Below are positions 3,001 to 17,979 of a stretch of 64,000 nucleotides of DNA, piece by piece. A program made the position numbers and the translations under genes. This stretch comes from Oikopleura dioica (Eukaryota; Animalia; Chordata). Numbering within the stretch: the first letter of the stretch is position 1; each line of letters begins with the position of its first letter. The DNA lies in the NCBI GenBank assembly GCA_907165135.1, contig OU015566.1:5208001-5272000 (forward strand). The letters are read 5' to 3'. The notes under the pieces were generated by a model. The model ran no database searches, had not been told where the DNA came from, and saw nothing but the letters and a program-made list of their open reading frames with translations.

Positions 3001-6000
3001 AACATGACCAGCGACATAGGTGCGGTGGAAATTTGATTGTATTCCTCAAGGAAGCCCTCGACTGTCGTTTTGAGAGTTGTCATGTCGGAAATCTCGTTGT
3101 AGACCTTGGACTCGCCAGCAAAGTCTCCGAAGAAAAGTGAGCGCACGTGATCTGGCTCCAAAGAGGCGGAATTAGCCGAGAGATGCGAAAGAAGTTTTTC
3201 TAAAGGAACTTTGAATGCATCATTCGTTGCAGATTTGATGATTTCGAAGAATAATCTTTGATCATCGGCGTCCACCAGACGATCAGCGAACACCCGATTA
3301 CTTTCGTGAACCCAGAGACGGATAAATTTTTCTGGCGAGTCGAGCTGCGATGGTGGAGTTTGGAGACAACCGAGAGTTACCCTGCTAAAATCGCGGAGAT
3401 TGAAAATGTAATGAGATTTAGTTGGAGTTGGCAAAAACGTCTTGGTTGCTTGAGTGAAGAGATTTAAAGTTGCTTGGACAGCCTGGAGACCAATTCGCTG
3501 GAAAGAAGCATCGTAGTTGTTGCGTTTCATGTGGATTGACGTGATAGTGGAGAAAATGTGACTCATGGCTTCATCGGATAGCTCAGGGAGAGAGATAATG
3601 TTCATGTGGCGAGCCATCCTGTCATCTACGGTGTTTCCACTGGATGGTGGGCCCATCGCTGCCAAGAATTGAACATCTTGCAGCTGGAATTTGGTCATAT
3701 CTTTCAGATCGTAGAAAAAGTCCAAGTCAAGCCATGTTCTCAGCAGCTCAATCGGTCCTTTTGCACCGTATGTTTCCTTTTGAGGCAAACTCAAGTCATC
3801 GACAAAGACAAGGCATCGTTTTCCAACTGGAGGTCCGTAAATTCCTTTCCGCCTCCGGTCCATTTTCACCATAATTGCATCTTGAGTTTGGTGTGCTGTT
3901 GTTCTCGCCGAGAAATTGACAATTAGTGGCAAGTATCCAACTGAACCTTCTGTCTTCGATGCTTTCATCAACCAGGTTTGAGTAAGAGCGGTTTTGCCTG
4001 TTCCTGTCGGGCCAACAAAAAGTAGTGGCAACTGTCGACCTTGGACGAGTGTATTTAAGAAATAGTTTTGCTGTACCGTGGTTGCATTTGGAATGATCAT
4101 TTCTCTTGCGGAGATAGAAGCAGGGAACTCCACGGCTTCAATAAGATTCCTCCAACTCTCCCACTGCCCGTTTGCTTTTTTCAGGAAGCAATAATCGTGA
4201 ACCAGTCCTTTTTCTGGAATAGCAACAAGTTTGTTCATTTTGATTGTCTTTGGCCGAGGGTGCTCGTCCTTCATTCCAGAGAGGAGCGGACGCAAGAAAC
4301 GGTTGAATTGTTCTCTGCCTTCTTCGCTCAATGTTGCTCCAAATGACCAGATCAGTGAAAATTGAAATAAACCAATGAGCCAGTTGGATGCCTGAACAAG
4401 GCTAAGCTCGTCTCCCGATCTCCATTCATCCAGATTCGCATCAAATAATTTCAAAAACGCGCTTGTCATGTGCTGGCCACCGGATGACATCATAAATTTC
4501 TGCTTTCCCAAGAACTCTAAGCAAGGCGTAAAGAGCCAGTTAAACATGTCCATCAACATTTCTTTCTCCGACTCTTGAATTCCACTTGGCAATGTGCTCA
4601 TAAAACACTTGACGAGTGGTTTCCAGCCGAGCTGATAAGGTTCAAGATATATCATTCCACAACGAGATACAGTGGCAGGTGAGGCCTGCTCCAGATCCGC
4701 CGGTTCGAAAATCATGCTCATAGTTGAGCCCATCTGAATTATCTCTCCCGACATTAGACAGAGTTTTTTGTTGTCATCAAGGACAGTGTTCATGTTTTCA
4801 ATCCAAACAGCATCTACTGGTCCGTCGAAGATCAACCACTGCCGCGCGTTTTTTGTGCCACAGAGATTCGCTTGCTCTCGGTAATTTATTGCCAGGACAC
4901 CGTCTGACCACTCATGGGAAACGGGATCGAAAGAACCATAAAGCTGGTTCATTGTAATTGACTTCGGATTGATGACTCTGTACTCGATCGGTAGAATTTC
5001 CTCGCTGTCTTCAGACATGATTGTAAGCGCTTCGGCAAGGCAAGAATAGTTGACTGTTTTGCCTCCCATGGTAGCACCGACGATCATAAAACCATGCCGA
5101 ACAATCATCATTTCGTAAATTTGCTGGATTTTAGTTTTCACCCAGTCCGTGGGATCAAGATTACGTGCTCTCATTACTTTTTCAATAGTTGCGTTGAGCG
5201 TTATGTAATCGGGCTGCGGAAGCTCTGTTCCTGGGAATAGATCGGAAACGATTCCATTGAACAGTGGAACGTCTTGAGCCAAGAACTTGGGCAAGTTGAC
5301 ATCAATAATTGCCCTAAGCATAAGAATACTCTCATCTTCCTCTGGCTGTTGAAGTTTAAGATTTCCAGCTGCTGTTAAAACCGATTTTACAGCTCGCATA
5401 CCGTAATCGTAGTGGTGCTGGGAGGACAGCTGTTCCGAGCAGAGTTTGTAAGTAGCCACGATTTTCTGAGCAAGAGATCTTGAGTTTCCAAATCCCATCG
5501 AATAGAGGGAAATTTCACCGATCATTCCGTAATCTGGAACCATCATCGCAACTGGTCTAAACAGAACCTTGAGGTTATCTGGCAGTTCAGAGCGGCCAGC
5601 ATATCCCGGATTCATTGTTATGAAAACAGCGCATTGCGCATTCAAGTTCAAATCGGTTCCCTCAAAATTAAACCTCGTCTTTCCTTCGCCTACTGCTTTC
5701 TGAATGCAAAGAATCTGCTGCGCCACGACCGAAAGCACTTCTATTTCAATTCGGTTGAACTCGTCAAAACAGGCCCAAGCCCCACAAGCAGCCAAGCCTT
5801 TGAAAAACTTTCCCATTGCCTTGTAGTCCAGCCCATCCGAGCAGTTAAAAACGACGCACTGCTTTGCTAATGCTTTTGCTAGATCTTTTGTTGTTTCAGT
5901 TTTACCAGTTCCGGCTGGTCCCTCAGGAGCACCTCCCAAATTGAGTTTGAGAGCTCCCATCAGTGTTCGATAGCATCTGTCTGTGAGTGGTGTAATGACC

Positions 6001-11804: not shown

Positions 11805-12924
11805 TATCTCCTGGTCATGATCAAATGTCAAATGTCAGATTTCAAATGTCAACAAATGTCATTTTTCCGAGACTACTCTTTTTTATAGAAGAATAACTCA
11901 TTCTGAATAAGTCTTTAGCGCTCCAAATCTCGTCCAAAATCAATTCAAATATTTTAATACGGCCATACAAATATATATATATATATATACATACAAAATT
12001 AAGAGTTTATAACTTGTTCTACAAACTGAGCATTAATATGATTAAAAAGATAATCTGAAAAATGAAAAAGAAAAAAAATTGACTTGTCAATGAGATCAAA
12101 ATTTCGCTCAATTGCTAAAATCTTAAATTTTTGAATAAAAACTTTTTTGACCTCAGATCCTGATTCTCCGTTAAAAAGTAGTTCCATAAGTAGGGATCAG
12201 CTTTTTAGAAAATATTTACCAAACGCGAGATAATCGCGTTTAAAAATCAATTTACCTACGCGTAGGTCGATATTAGGGTTCGCAATAGGGTAGGCCAAAA
12301 AAAGGGATGGTCCTTAGATTTCCTCAAAACTTTCAATAATCATAGTTTTTCACCCATATATTTATTTTCAATAATAATTTGAAAAAAAAAATTTTCTTTT
12401 CCTAGATTTCCGAAGGGTTGAAAACCGAAAAAACGTGTTTTTGGGCGATAAGTTTTTCCCAAGCTCCATTTCAAAAGATTTTCTTCCGTATGTGGAAAGA
12501 TCACAATAAGACGAACATTTTGAGTACTCAACGGACCCTCTAGCGGTAGCGGAAGACATTCAAAATTGAAAAAGAAAGGTTATGCGATAGTGGGATCTCT
12601 ATAGTGCAGGAGTCGATTTTCTTATCATCCTTGTATGGGGGTGATTAACATATCTACCGAAAGCTTATGATCTACTTAACATTTTGACATGAGACTATTG
12701 GTCATTGGGGGTCACGTGAGGTCACATGACCTCAAAATAAAAAGAACATTAATGAAATCTTCATTGAAAAATGCGGCAAGCAAAACATAAAAAATTCTGA
12801 TTAATATTAAGCAATTACAAAATCATCATTGAAAATTCGAATATAAGGGTCGCGAGTTCGAATCCCAGTATGACCAATTTTTTTTTTTTGCTTAAAAAAC
12901 GAACACTTGATTTATTTTAAATAA

Positions 12925-14261
12925 TTATTCTTGTTTATTAAAGTACTCGACAGTTTGAGTGTACAGTTCTTTTTTGGATCTCTTTTTCTTCAAGTTCGAC
13001 TGGATGACAACTCTATCCTCATCTGACAATTGACTGTTCAAATAATCCAAAACATGTCCGCGAAATTGTCGAAGGGATGTCTTTTCGGGGAACATTGGCT
13101 TGACGAGTTGAACAAACTTTTCGAAGCATTGGTTTTCGTCGATCTACAACAAAATTTGCTACAATAAAAGAATGAGAATTGAAACCTCGTTATCGGCTGA
13201 AGGCCACAATTTATTTTCGCCGATTATAGCATGAAAAACGGCTACTTTTGTTCGTTTCGCCTCGCTTTCTTTGATTTCTTCGAGTTTTTTCGCCACAGAC
13301 TCGATTCGTAAAGACCGCCGTCTTTCCGTGTTCTTTGCCTCTTTCAAAGAGGCATTCGCGAATATCTTCGAGAGTTTTTCTTCAAAATCGGTCTGACGTT
13401 GCCAGAAAGTGAAGGTCATGTTGAACCGAGTCATGACGGTGGTCTCGAATTTCTTCGTATCCATGTTGAATTTCCGAGAGAAGAGATCTTTAGCACTTCC
13501 AAATGAACGTTCGCAGTCCTTATAAATGTTATTGACAGTCTCAATTTGTTAATCGAACCTGATTCGTGAAAGTGATCTCCTTCGTAAAAGGAAAGGAACA
13601 GTCGATTGAAAATTTGTTGAACCGCTCATCGACAGCCGCAAGACGAAGTTTTATGCAATCATCGAGATATTTTGACGTGTTCTTGTCGGCTGACAGTTGC
13701 TTAACGGCCTCTTCAAAGCCTAATTCCCACACAGCTTCGGTTTTTTTGGCTTCTTCGAGAAGAAATAATGCTGGTGAAGCGCAATCGGCAACATGTTGAA
13801 GAATCGTTTTGAAGTGTTCTTCAAGGCCCAAGTAATCTTCTGATGACAATAATCCAGAAACACGGCTCCAATAAGGAGCCACTAGTACGCTGTAAACCAA
13901 TGCGGAACTGCCGAGCTCACAAACAGCTTTTTCTTGGTTGTCTTCAAGAACTTTGGCATCGTCTTCGAGTTCGAGTTCGAAACGAACAAAATTGATGATG
14001 CTTCATCTCAAGATCCACCTCATCATCGATAGAGAACGTCAGAAGTTTTTTCGCGAGAGTGCGGGTGTTTCGCTGAAGATATTCTTGCGAGCCGAAGCCG
14101 TGCATGAGAAGTTTTCGGGCCAGTTTCGTGCTTTTTGGCTCGTTCTCTTTAGCACTCCTTTTGTTTTTCGTCAAGACTGACAGATGAGAAACAGGAACAC
14201 CAGCACGATTTGCAAGTTCGACAATTCTGATAGTCACAGTGACAACAGACGAAGCGGACAT
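12925..14261 (-). pseudogene. Spliced, disrupted transposase-like gene (~430 aa), probably the central/C-terminal part of a hAT-like transposase
   Basis: ORF pieces 14261-13944, 13900-13541, 13464-13159 and a last exon (tag|IDENQCFEKF...NKQE*); DCERSFGSAKDLFSRKFNM...VMTRFN resembles the hAT dimerisation-region ERxF motif; lies inside a TIR/8-bp-TSD element; stop/frameshift near 13945. Confidence 0.5.
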
Positions 14262-14424
14262 TTCAACAAAGATCGAGATTTCTGAAAAAGTTCCCGTTAA
14301 TTCTTTTTCCCAAAAAAAATCTGAATGAACAAAAAAGGAATAGAATCTAAACAAAAAAAAAAATAATTCGTACAAAAAATGATTAAGATTAAAAATTATT
14401 TGTGAATTGAAGGAATGAAGTCTT

Positions 14425-14662
14425 CGTGTCGGTATACAAAGATTGCTTGAAAAAAAAATTCACTATGCAATATTCCTTGATATAAGTCGTCGGTTCCATG
14501 TGTATAAGTCTACAGAGATTGCTTTTAAAATAATTTTTAAAATAAGCAATATTCCTTGAGAAGAGTCGTCGGTTCCATGTCCAGAAGTCTGAAGTGATTG
14601 CTTGAAAAATAATTTCTAAAATGAGCAATATTCCTGGATAACAGTCGTCGGTTCCATGTGTA
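14425..14662. repeat. Tandem repeat, 79-bp period, ~3 copies
   Basis: GCAATATTCCT...GTCGTCGGTTCCATGT at 14467, 14546 and 14625. Confidence 0.85.
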
Positions 14663-14942
14663 CGTCGAGTAAAGTAATAATTTTCACAATGCCTATTCGG
14701 TTTCGGACTCGATAATTGAATTCACATTATCCTTTTGTTTAAAGAAACTGATAATATAAATATCAAAAATCACTACAGTCTTACTACCTTAGCCATAGAA
14801 TCATATGATTCCTTTTTCGAAAACTTCTATTTTTCATTTACTAAAAAATGACCTTAGAATAAGACCTTAGAATATTGTGAACAATCATAGGAATTATTAA
14901 AATCATTTTAAAGTAATTAAAAAAAGAAAAATTCGAAAATTT

Positions 14943-15612
14943 GGCATGACCCGTCTCCTTATTTCCACTTTTACCCCGACAGCCCGTGTGCCAGGCAGCC
15001 CCCTAGTCCCACCAGTGCTCCCCGTAGTTTCCCCATTCGGGTTCGCCCGGCGCAAGGCTGTTAAGCCAAGGGCCAGGTGGGCCTTGATTTCGCCCTAGGC
15101 AAAACCAAGTCCCTCGATCCCGGGGACGGGTTGGGGCGCGCCGGGAGTCACCCGTGCTGGTGGGTGGACTGCTCTCTTCTGGCACACCAGGAGGGGCAAA
15201 GCCCCCTGGCTTGCTTGGGCCCCCTGCCCGTAGATCCGGATGAGGCAGGGGAACGGTCGGGGTGGCAGGGGGCACTGCCCTTATGAGGCTCGGGTTGTGG
15301 GATAATAATCCCGCCTCAGGCAAGTGCCCCGGCCGGTGGGATCCTAAGGGCTCGGGCTCTGCCGCTGGCCTAAAGAGACCAGCACTCCTTGCTCAAGGGA
15401 GCTGCAGGCTTGCTCTACAGCGGTCCGGTCACCGCGGCTTCAGGGGGCATCCCCAGACCCACCACTTAAACCCCCTCGCGGTGCTAGGGCCGGGCTGGTT
15501 CGACGAAACCATCCCTGGTGGGTTTCTGGGGAATTGGGGCTCGGCGACGGAACTGGCCGGCGCCCGCCCCCATCTTACCATTAGTTCTAGGGGAAGGGGG
15601 ACCAGCTTCTTT
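14943..15612. ncRNA. Candidate large structured RNA / GC-rich fold-back module of unknown class
   Basis: Sharply GC-rich block in AT-rich flanks, with many perfect or near-perfect helices (GTGTGCCAG/CTGGCACAC, CCCGGCGC/GCGCCGGG, GGGGC-AAA-GCCCC, ACCCACCA/TGGTGGGT). No convincing ORF. Transcription not shown. Confidence 0.45.
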
Positions 15613-15945
15613 AAAATTTTAAATAAATTTAAAATAAAAAACTGGCCATGCTAAAGGAGGCCGGGCGGCACTGAACACCGGCAAAATTTGCCAGCGTGGC
15701 AGTGGACCACCTAGAAAAAAGCGCAAAAATGCGCTGTCTGTCCGCCAGAGTTCGAAATCTGGTAGAAAATCCGTGCTCCTGCTCCACCAACGTGGAAAAA
15801 GCCTGCTCCCTGCTGCTTTTTGTGGCAAGTTTTATTAAAAAGTATTTTTATTTATCAATAATGAAAATTTTTTAATAAAAATTTCATAAAAACTTTAAAT
15901 TTCATTAATTTTAAATAAAAATGTTTTATTTTCCTCCACCTCCAA

Positions 15946-16027
15946 GTCTGGATGGCTTGGTGGTGAGGGCGATCGACCACCAAGGTGGAGGTTTTGGGTT
16001 CGATTCCCGGCGCCGCCGACTTTTTTT
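15946..16027 (+). ncRNA. tRNA-like Pol III unit (degenerate; not a functional tRNA)
   Basis: A-box-like TGGCTTGGTGG, B-box GGTTCGATTCCC, intact T arm, mismatched anticodon arm (CCA in loop), poor acceptor stem, T7 terminator. Confidence 0.5.
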
Positions 16028-17611
16028 CAGCTCGACCCTTCAATTTTTGAGGGCTTAAAAACTGCCTTCCGCTACCGACAGGGTATGACTTTCAATATAA
16101 AAAAAGTTTACTTTGATGTAAACTTTCATATAAAATTGAAAAAGGGTTGAAATAGACCACTCACTTTTTTTGGCCTACCCTAGTTCGCAATGAAAAATTT
16201 TTGGCTACAAAAATGGCCTCAAAATTGTTTTTTATTGAAAATTGGAATAGAAACTTCATCATTCTGAATCTAAATTTAAAAATAAAATTGAAAAAATTAT
16301 ATATGGATGTATATGGATCAGTCTGATTTGCGAAGAGATGAAATAAGGCGTCCTTTACAATCCTTCTTTAAAAGGAATTGTTATGGCACCACTGATGAGG
16401 CTGACACAGGGTGAGACTTGATACTGATAGGTGAATAATTAAAATTGCTTTTTCGAAGTGAATATGTATGTGTATCATCCTGATCTTTTAAGGGATGAAT
16501 AAGAGTGCACTTATCAAAAATTAAACAAAAAGAATAGTTCTGGCATCACTGATCATGCGGACACAGCCTGTGTCGAGAATCTGATAAGTGCGATATTGAA
16601 CATGCTTTTTACGAATTGAATATGTATCTATATCATCTCTCGTGGGATGAATGGGGGCGTATAAATCGACACTTTCATAGAAGGAATAGTTTTGTCATCA
16701 TTAACAACCCGACACAAAGTTTTGATGACTGAAATGTTGAGATTAATTTAAGAATAATTCAAGGAAAATGCTATAAATAAAAATAATGACGAAAAATTCT
16801 CGTGGCCTCCTTTTTAATTGTCATCAAATTTTCTTGTATTATTTTTAATAATTTAAATATTTTATGAAAATTTTATAAAAAAATATCTTCAAAATTAAGA
16901 ATTATTGGAAAATATTAATTTATAGTTATAAAATTTTATTATTTTTTATTTTAATATTTATTAAATTTAATAAATGCAAGAAGATAAATTATTTTAATGT
17001 ATTAAATTTTTACATAAAAATAAAAAAATATATAATTATTATTTATTAAATTTATTTTATTTAAATATTTATTTAAAAAATCGTAAGAGCACACTCTTGC
17101 TTGAAACTCAAAAGTTGGAGCTTCGAGCTTGCCTGAGCCAACAGCGCCACCATCGCCAAGCGCTCAGCGCTTTTTGGTTTGACTACGTCATGCTGACGTC
17201 GTAAAAATAGCGATTTTTCTACCGCCCGTTATTCATCAACGAAAAAGATATATAAAATCTGATTTCAGATTTGAAATCAGGAAAGCCTAATTTATATAAA
17301 AATTAAATATAATTTTATAAAATCATTAAAATAAACCCCCAATTTTTCATTGCGAACCCTAGTCGATATGCGGGCAGGGGTTAAAGAGTTTTCTGAAATT
17401 TACTGTGTAATTTTTTAAAATCGTAGGGGAGCGGTCAATTTTGAATGAAAATTGACGGAGAAAGCCACTAGCGTCAAATTTACGAAAATCCTCCGTTTCT
17501 CATTTCGGCGCAGCGCTCTCGAGTTCGCGAAAAAGAAGCGCGCTTTGATTGGTCGCCGATTTACGGTCTTCGATTTTCGAAGGCGAAAATTTCCACAAGC
17601 GAAGCGAGAGA

Positions 17612-17979
17612 ATGTCGTATCAAAACGCTCCTTACTATTCTGACAAATACACTGACGAGAAGTTCGAATACAGACACGTTCACATTCCCAAAGAGTGGGT
17701 TCGGTGAGTTTATTTGCGATTGAAATTTTCGCGAGGAAAGTGTTCAGACGACTGCCTAAAGAACGAACCATGTCGGAAACAGAGTGGCGAGAGCTGGGTG
17801 TACAGCAGAGCCAGGTAAAGTTAAAAAGTGTTTTTGTATGCTTGAAGAATTTCGAAAATGCCGCGATTATTATTTATGACTCATAAATTATGAGTGACCA
17901 ATTTTAGGGTTGGGTGCACTACATGATTCACGATCCGGAGCCACACATTTTGCTCTTCCGGCGGCTAAAGCCCTGCTAA
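17612..17979 (+). CDS. CKS1: Cyclin-dependent kinases regulatory subunit (CKS1/Suc1), 3 exons
   Basis: YYSDKYTDEKFEYRHVHIPK / MSETEWRELGVQQSQ / GWVHYMIHDPEPHILLFRR; GT-AG introns 17704-17747 and 17815-17907. Confidence 0.95.

Follow-up and report, generated by a model that had tools for sequence, protein, structure and literature searches.

The stretch of the Oikopleura dioica genome analysed here (contig OU015566.1, positions 5,208,001 to 5,272,000 of the forward strand; 64,000 nucleotides, referred to as the window) holds a DNA transposon of the hAT type that carries a GC-rich block next to its transposase gene. The element spans positions 12287-16182 of the window and is bounded by a pair of terminal inverted repeats (TIRs), the left one (TAGGGTAGGCCAAAAAAA, 12287-12304, plus strand) pairing with the right one (16165-16182, minus strand). 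The identical 8-bp target-site duplication (TSD) GTTCGCAA lies on both sides, at 12279-12286 and 16183-16190. The transposase gene on the minus strand (12928-14261) is a remnant: tblastn with the protein P0001, whose exons were searched singly, recovers residues 10-96 and 444-773 of 773, while residues from about 97 to 443 are deleted. P0001 is the public annotation (773 aa) of the full-length protein encoded by a sister copy, C2, and is entered as Oidioi.mRNA.OKI2018_I69.XSR.g14271.t1 of Oikopleura dioica. The C2 copy itself is a full-length element (L004 3805-8930) with the 8-bp TSD CTGACTTG. The GC block lies 0.68 kb upstream of the minus-strand gene, the ATG of which is at 14261-14259, and on its other side borders the right subterminal region of the element. 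With the TIR pair, the 8-bp TSD and this gene in place, the original prediction, made from the letters of the window, was right in placing the block inside a hAT transposon and upstream of a transposase-like gene.

The hAT-type label is accepted because of the TSD length and the TIR start, together with the neighbours of the transposase among Atlas models. In the genome, 48 such TIR ends are found, and 15 of the 16 further elements that were fetched have perfect 8-bp TSDs, the other one (L025) being off by one base. The TIRs start with TAGGGTAGGCC at both ends, fitting the pattern YARNG, and this start resembles the end of Ac, TAGGGATGAAA. The Atlas model neighbours of the transposase are hAT-derived proteins of the GTF2IRD2, ZBED and DUF659 types with Dimer_Tnp_hAT, at template modelling (TM) scores of 0.5-0.68 that make them a lead only. 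The transposase has no match in Pfam, neither to the C-terminal dimerisation domain of hAT transposases (PF05699) nor to another family, and no sequence match in the PDB, and only seven relatives of it were found among 1.8 billion cluster representatives. It contains a motif, ..NQxCERSF.., that we take to resemble the hAT C-terminal signature.

The GC content of positions 14946-15612 is 0.646, compared to 0.248 in the flank at 14700-14945, 0.00 at 15613-15639 and 0.07 at 15831-15930. The abrupt GC island in AT-rich flanks that had been described is thus confirmed (64.6% GC versus 0-25% in the flanks). The unit is wider than had been described: a conserved core (14944-15440) is extended to 15612 in a family-specific manner, and a further block reaches 15830. 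Read in the direction of the transposase gene (minus strand), the core differs from that of C2 by 10 substitutions and ends with the 14-mer GGAGACGGGTCATG (14945-14958), which forms the sense-strand 3' edge of the block. Upstream of this 14-mer lie the motif GGGGAAACTACGNGGA (15019-15034), an irregular hairpin, or rod, with a conserved CAACCC[GA]AGCC loop (15262-15340; folding z -5.4 on the sense strand) and a hairpin with the 13-mer CCCTTGAGCAAGG (15385-15401), all on the minus strand. The 5' extension of this first block, block A, covers 15441-15612 on the same strand and includes a helix formed by 15451-15464 and 15516-15531. It is followed by a self-complementary, A/T-only linker of 27 nt (15613-15639, GC 0.00), which differs from C2 by one substitution and one indel, and by the second GC block (B, 15640-15830, minus strand), in which near-identity with C2 stops at about 15790.

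The block has a dinucleotide signature unlike that of the genome, with an observed/expected CpG ratio of 0.63 versus 1.17. Together with the AAAATTT word on both sides of the island and the different block found at the same site in a related family (L022, see below), this would fit a retroposed RNA nested in the element, or a fragment captured from the host or from a foreign source. The AAAATTT words had been taken for direct repeats; they do flank the island, but the word recurs at 15683, 15864 and 15878, and in flanks so AT-rich (A/T-only around the word) we estimate the chance of such a 7-mer match at about one in three, which makes it not significant. Furthermore, there is no A-tail, and six-frame searches of the genome (64.28 Mb, 19 contigs) recover only two copies, the window and C2, both inside the same type of element. 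A foreign origin was rejected because no exact word of the block turned up in two scans of metagenome contigs or in those of viral contigs and prokaryote genomes. In addition, the block is shared, in the same orientation, with a deeply diverged hAT family. A nested or captured fragment is accordingly very improbable, and the option of a retroposed RNA in the original prediction finds no support.

The open reading frames (ORFs) in the block are short, and its translations have no Pfam match and no protein-level homologue; two further ORF queries were also empty. The two genomic copies differ by indels of 1, 2, 1, 3, 1 and 1 nt. One ORF translation led to a third copy, the environmental 91-aa protein P0008 from an 863-bp ENA contig, which runs through window positions 15215-15490 in another frame pattern, so that the three copies have three different frame patterns. 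The differing frames of P0008 confirm that the block is non-coding and mark P0008 as a more diverged sequence. A coding exon was thus rejected on the frameshifting indels, the frames of P0008 and the lack of homologues; judged by these comparisons, the block is non-coding.

No known RNA family accounts for the block either. Rfam 15 gave 0 matches at the gathering threshold over the whole window, and with permissive filters up to an E value of 1 in 14700-16200 only chance-level matches (E > 0.05), none of them in block A; the corresponding block of the second hAT family introduced below (E29) likewise has no Rfam match. ARAGORN called no tRNA. A telomerase template or RNase P/MRP was rejected, as the block contains no CCCTAA/TTAGGG word and no covariance-model match. 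The Rfam search on the block upholds the earlier statement that known ribozyme and RNA cores do not match it, and it does not bear out the ribozyme-like option, as a ribozyme core was not found. What the block shares with the ribozymes and housekeeping RNAs of Rfam (hammerhead, HDV-like, twister, group I/II, RNase P/MRP and telomerase) is a GC-rich, multi-helix look only.

The conservation of the block stands out against the divergence of the elements that carry it. Over 213 codons, the transposases of the window and C2 copies have a synonymous divergence (dS) of 1.03 and a non-synonymous divergence (dN) of 0.105 (dN/dS 0.10), and the non-coding ends of the elements are 63-78% identical, distances by which the lineages of the two elements are old. 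Only 21 of 845 sites (2.5%) differ in the tract from 14946 to about 15790, while identity is about 75% on either side of it. The sharp borders, a transition/transversion ratio of 0.5 (7 transitions and 14 transversions) and the unrelated foldable block at the same place in L022 were the grounds for the initial reading as swappable passenger DNA in a recently recombined patch, which was dropped once the second hAT family (E29/E30) showed the same pattern. A related reading is that the block has no function of its own and is a hotspot of ectopic gene conversion between copies, with GC-biased repair having made it GC-rich. This would account for the bounded and uniform tract, which includes the A/T linker, for the low transition/transversion ratio, for stem substitutions that mostly break pairs, and for the GC-rich material of other kinds at the same place in L022 and, as minisatellites, in other subfamilies. 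It is rendered quite unlikely by the second family pair, which shows the pattern independently and as a gradient of divergence, by the survival of exact 13-14-mers at about 25% transposase identity, where neutral sequence could not persist, by a block divergence that by our calculation roughly scales with transposase dN within and between families, and by an avoidance of stems by substitutions that is strand-specific.

The second family is represented by E29 (L029 2302-7273, with the 8-bp TSD GTTTACAT) and E30 (in L030). Both have TIRs beginning with TAGGGTCGGAAATTTC and a transposase with only about 25% identity to P0001; the AF2 model of the E29 transposase is poor (pLDDT 46.6), and Foldseek on that model was uninformative. 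E29 and E30 too carry GC blocks upstream of the transposase gene. Local alignment of the window core (14944-15440, minus strand) with block 2 of E29 gives a z of 9.4 in the transposase-sense direction and of -0.4 in antisense, with colinear anchors. By this alignment, the core has a homologue, equally placed and oriented, in a hAT family with a transposase of about 25% identity, which is a new finding. The 14-mer GGAGACGGGTCATG has exactly four matches in the 64 Mb of the genome, each at the transposase-proximal edge of one of the four blocks, and every one of these blocks also has GGGGAAACTACGNGGA at a distance of 76-77 nt upstream of the 14-mer. The 13-mer CCCTTGAGCAAGG, which served as an alignment anchor, as well as CGGTGACC, ACCCCGAC and other words, is colinear between the families, the alignments show CAACCC[GA]AGCC in both, and in both the core is closed by the complementary ends GTGACC and GGTCAT. 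The 5' extension of block A has no counterpart in E29/E30, and the homology between block B and block 1 of E29 is not significant (z 0.8). A covariance model of the 3' domain found no genomic members beyond the four known copies.

Within the second family, block 2 differs between E29 and E30 at 10 of 475 sites (2.1%), compared to a dS of 0.63 and a dN of 0.09 (dN/dS 0.14) for the transposases. Divergence rises from 2% in block 2 to about 7% in its flanks and about 17% in the gene. Without selection, it is difficult to account both for two independent patches that coincide with one module and for 13-14-mers shared by families with 25% protein identity. As these two distant families keep the block more faithfully than their transposase genes, the block is probably functional. 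In both families, the divergence of the block is about 0.23 times dN, and by our estimate the divergence between the families is of the order that this ratio predicts. This fits long vertical descent under steady and strong constraint, with the block replaced in the lineage of L022.

The L022 family is closer to the window family by its transposase, which is 44-60% identical, and has a GC block at the same place (L022 3810-4410) that is similar in size and GC content and folds with z values of -4.7 and -6.2, a stronger excess than that of the window block. However, neither blastn nor shared k-mers nor local alignment, on either strand, reveals homology between the two blocks, and the L022 block has none of the motifs conserved between the window and E29. 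The module is therefore replaceable. A 98-99% identical internal-deletion derivative of L022, L018 (both on contig C5), lacks L022 2497-4242, and with it most of the GC block and the transposase N-terminus, and keeps a perfect TSD. Four non-autonomous elements with the TIR TAGGGTCGGCCAAAAAAA (L012, L013, L017 and L020; contigs C1, C4 and C5) have GC-rich arrays of a 57-nt minisatellite at the position of the block. In L017, the only one of them examined in this respect, Tandem Repeats Finder shows arrays in opposed orientation. This family looks recently active, since all four members have perfect 8-bp TSDs.

All arms of the nested helices that had been listed for the window block are found at their positions. 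GTGTGCCAG at 14986 pairs with CTGGCACAC at 15179, CCCGGCGC at 15046 with GCGCCGGG at 15138, and CCCCAG-ACCCACCA at 15451 with TGGTGGGT-CTGGGG at 15516; a hairpin at 15187-15209 and the rod at 15269-15330 are also present. The minimum free energy of the plus strand is -333 kcal/mol versus -312 +/- 8 for dinucleotide shuffles (z -2.7); the minus strand has a z of -3.3, and none of 80 shuffles was as stable. In segments of 150 nt, the block has a mean z of -1.8 (plus) and -2.1 (minus), compared to -0.5 and -0.3 for the remaining element. The C2 block folds with z values of -2.3 and -3.65, and the lower z falls on the minus strand in the window, C2 and L022 blocks alike. Base-pairing beyond chance is thus borne out, but the excess is modest, and most of the dense pairing is therefore attributable to GC content.

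More specific evidence comes from the positions of the substitutions. When the core is folded alone on the sense strand, the 19 within-family substitutions avoid the predicted stems: 12 fall at paired positions versus 22.3 expected given base identity, with both references counted (P 0.0003; about 0.015 by our estimate if counted once). The antisense strand shows no such depletion (23 versus 23.3 expected). The claim is based on this core-only fold test; when stems and loops were compared over the whole block, most of the signal vanished once base identity was taken into account. By this measure, the informative strand is the minus, transposase-sense strand of the window, opposite to the strand on which the helices had been read. 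Two changes between E29 and E30 convert G-C to G-U on the sense strand, and two others lie in the loop of that same perfect 7-bp hairpin. In P0008, an Ala>Val change at 15265-67 and a Gly>Asp change at 15331-33 imply that 15266 has changed from C to T and 15332 from G to A. In the local fold of either strand these positions pair with each other, and the replacement of C-G by U-A would be a compensatory change, deduced here from the protein translation. Similarly, P0008 appears to add one base on each arm of the hairpin at 15385-15401, as deduced from the protein, in which third codon positions are unseen. The rod at 15262-15340 and its counterpart in E29 are similar irregular hairpins with different stems around the shared CAACCC[GA]AGCC loop. 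The consensus fold of the anchored four-sequence alignment has a z of -2.2 (sense) and -2.9 (antisense) relative to column shuffles. Taken together, these observations make an RNA-level function of the block likely.

In E29, the segment CCCGTCTCCCCTAGTTTCCCC just before block 2 (L029 3025-3045) is complementary to both conserved 3' motifs (3479-3569), with a duplex energy of -74.6 versus -57.3 +/- 4.8 for shuffles. This long-range pairing is not kept in the window copy.

The reading that we tentatively prefer, and hold to be possible, sees in the block a conserved, structured RNA module that serves the transposase as 5' leader or regulator in a hAT clade of Oikopleura dioica. Transcription would start upstream of the block and proceed in the direction of the transposase (minus strand of the window), and the block would form a long, GC-rich and hairpin-rich 5' leader of the transposase pre-mRNA, perhaps as a first non-coding exon. 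The AT-rich spacer that separates block and ATG (0.55-0.67 kb) would be removed via a conserved acceptor, (Y-run)(C/T)AG|AAATCT. In the window, this splice-acceptor-like pyrimidine run, followed by CAG|AAATCT, lies at 14282-14292 (minus strand), 20 nt upstream of the ATG. Such a run with (C/T)AG|AAATCT is found 12-23 nt before the ATG in three hAT families (window, C2, E29, E30 and L022), the other sites being at about 5600 in L004, 4100 in L029 and 3470 in L022. Its position suggests the 3' splice site of an intron in the 5' untranslated region or a spliced-leader site. The block could accordingly be joined by cis-splicing, from a possible GT donor in the invariant GGAGACGG|GTCATG at the block edge, or a spliced leader could be added at the acceptor by trans-splicing, a process that O. 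dioica employs. The introns of the element itself have weak GT donors as well, e.g., GTGAAT and GTTTAC. Folding of the leader and the ATGs upstream in it would then set the amount of transposase.

The leader of the maize Ac element is about 0.65 kb long and GC-rich. Like it, the Oikopleura block is a non-coding stretch of several hundred nucleotides between a hAT element end and the transposase ORF. The two have no sequence relation; in Oikopleura, an AT-rich spacer of 0.55-0.67 kb and a conserved acceptor precede the ATG, the block is conserved beyond its transposase and across two deep families, and its status as a leader is a prediction. For the maize Ac transposase, shortening of the long untranslated leader raised transposition in Arabidopsis (PMC2921059).

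Several findings weigh against the leader reading. The thermodynamic signal in the window is modest (z about -3), and block 2 of E29 lacks a stability excess over shuffled sequence when the sense strand is folded (z -0.8; -2.0 antisense). The alignment of the blocks between families is uncertain and its structure conservation index is only 0.31, and compensatory double changes are absent within either family pair. The candidate GT donor at the block edge is weak and itself conjectural. Furthermore, L022, the closer relative by transposase, carries an unrelated GC block at the same position, transitions are not favoured among the substitutions between the window and C2 blocks, and their divergence of about 2% runs through the A/T linker too, which would also fit recent homogenisation. 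As regards covariation or a structure-neutral pattern of changes among copies, the depletion of changes in sense-strand stems, the two G-U changes and the one deduced pair in P0008 speak for it, but the structure conservation index is low and the copies amount to two deep lineages and one fragment.

The weak conservation of structure, together with inter-family conservation in the form of identical islands of 7-14 nt and with words in the upstream block of E29 that we read as CCAAT-like and TATA-like, could also point to a cis-regulatory region at the DNA level, i.e., a promoter or enhancer of the transposase gene kept for protein binding. Within each family, however, the spacers vary as little as the islands (about 2% over 475-845 nt), which is unusual for clusters of binding sites. 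The strand-specific avoidance of stems by substitutions and the compensatory pair change in P0008 also count against such a region, and we regard it as unlikely.

A leader or regulatory role for the transposase also fits better than a free-standing cofactor RNA. In the latter case, the block would yield a trans-acting transposon RNA that serves as a scaffold or cofactor of the transposase, as a small-RNA precursor or as a decoy for host silencing. The block evolves four times slower than the non-synonymous sites of the transposase, the complementary core ends GTGACC/GGTCAT are kept in both families, conserved unpaired islands lie beside helices that vary between families, and the non-autonomous window copy keeps the block intact despite its transposase deletion, all of which such an RNA would explain. 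Against it, the block has no complementarity to the element ends, the sole TIR-like word (15094-15104) not being kept in C2, and an RNA polymerase III (Pol III) unit is disfavoured by T4 runs, which both strands of the block contain. Transposases of the DDE or hAT kind are not known to have an RNA cofactor, which also counts against this alternative. It is distinctly improbable, and the same holds for its more specific form, in which the core of about 500 nt would represent a new family of functional RNAs and partner a hAT (DDE-type) transposase as scaffold, targeting or regulatory cofactor, or in anti-silencing. Such a role would explain the roughly fourfold slower evolution of the core than of transposase non-synonymous sites in two long-split families. 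The description as an unclassified structured RNA of a mobile element therefore survives insofar as the block is non-coding, constrained and without Rfam match, whereas a leader role suits it better than that of a cofactor.

Like the IS110 bridge RNA and the omega RNAs of TnpB, IscB and Fanzor, the block is a non-coding part of a mobile element beside a recombinase or nuclease gene, although its RNA is predicted here. Those RNAs work with other classes of enzyme than the hAT-like, DDE-type transposase of the present elements. Moreover, bridge and omega RNAs abut or overlap the element end and have loops complementary to the ends or the target, whereas the Oikopleura block is internal and shows no conserved complementarity to the element ends, the word at 15094-15104 being altered in C2.

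The usual description of a cut-and-paste transposon comprises terminal repeats and a gene for the transposase. Here, the best-conserved part of the element in two deep hAT families is a non-coding block (divergence K about 0.02, compared to a dS of 0.6-1.0 and a dN of about 0.1). If the block acts as RNA, it would represent an undescribed regulatory or cofactor layer of a eukaryotic DDE transposon. The host is a chordate whose very compact genome contains related elements that are young, judging by their perfect TSDs, and that reportedly create introns. The block would also make a concrete candidate, in that its strand and borders are defined, its motifs are conserved and a splice acceptor is predicted. 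A conversion hotspot, should the block prove to be one, would instead be a clean case of concerted evolution confined to one segment of a transposon.

The element has further features outside the block. A tRNA-like module lies at 15940-16027 (plus strand), with an A-box-like TGGCTTGGTGG, a B box (GGTTCGA[AT]TCC) and a T7 run; ARAGORN calls no tRNA in it. It is also present at L004 3935-4050 (minus strand) and L022 4975-5067 (plus strand), and it is 76-88% conserved in C2, L022 and L018, across two families with unrelated GC blocks. To judge by its motifs, this subterminal module may serve as a TFIIIC site or form a Pol III unit. Near the opposite end of the element, a B-box-like fragment, GAGTTCGAATCCC, followed by a T-run (T12), lies at 12840-12890 (plus strand) and aligns with the C2 copy; its orientation is that of the tRNA-like module. 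Between the block and the gene, Tandem Repeats Finder and a repeat search show 2.9 copies of a 79-bp tandem repeat (14440-14662), each unit with GTCGTCGGTTCCATGTG, which is partly common to the C2 copy.

A long ORF resembling ch-TOG/XMAP215 (L004 1113-4058) has the C2 copy inserted at its 3' end and reads into the element end at 3805. To the right of the window element, an exon at 17549-17707 (plus strand) presumably encodes a CKS1-like (cyclin-dependent kinase subunit) peptide, to go by its translation.

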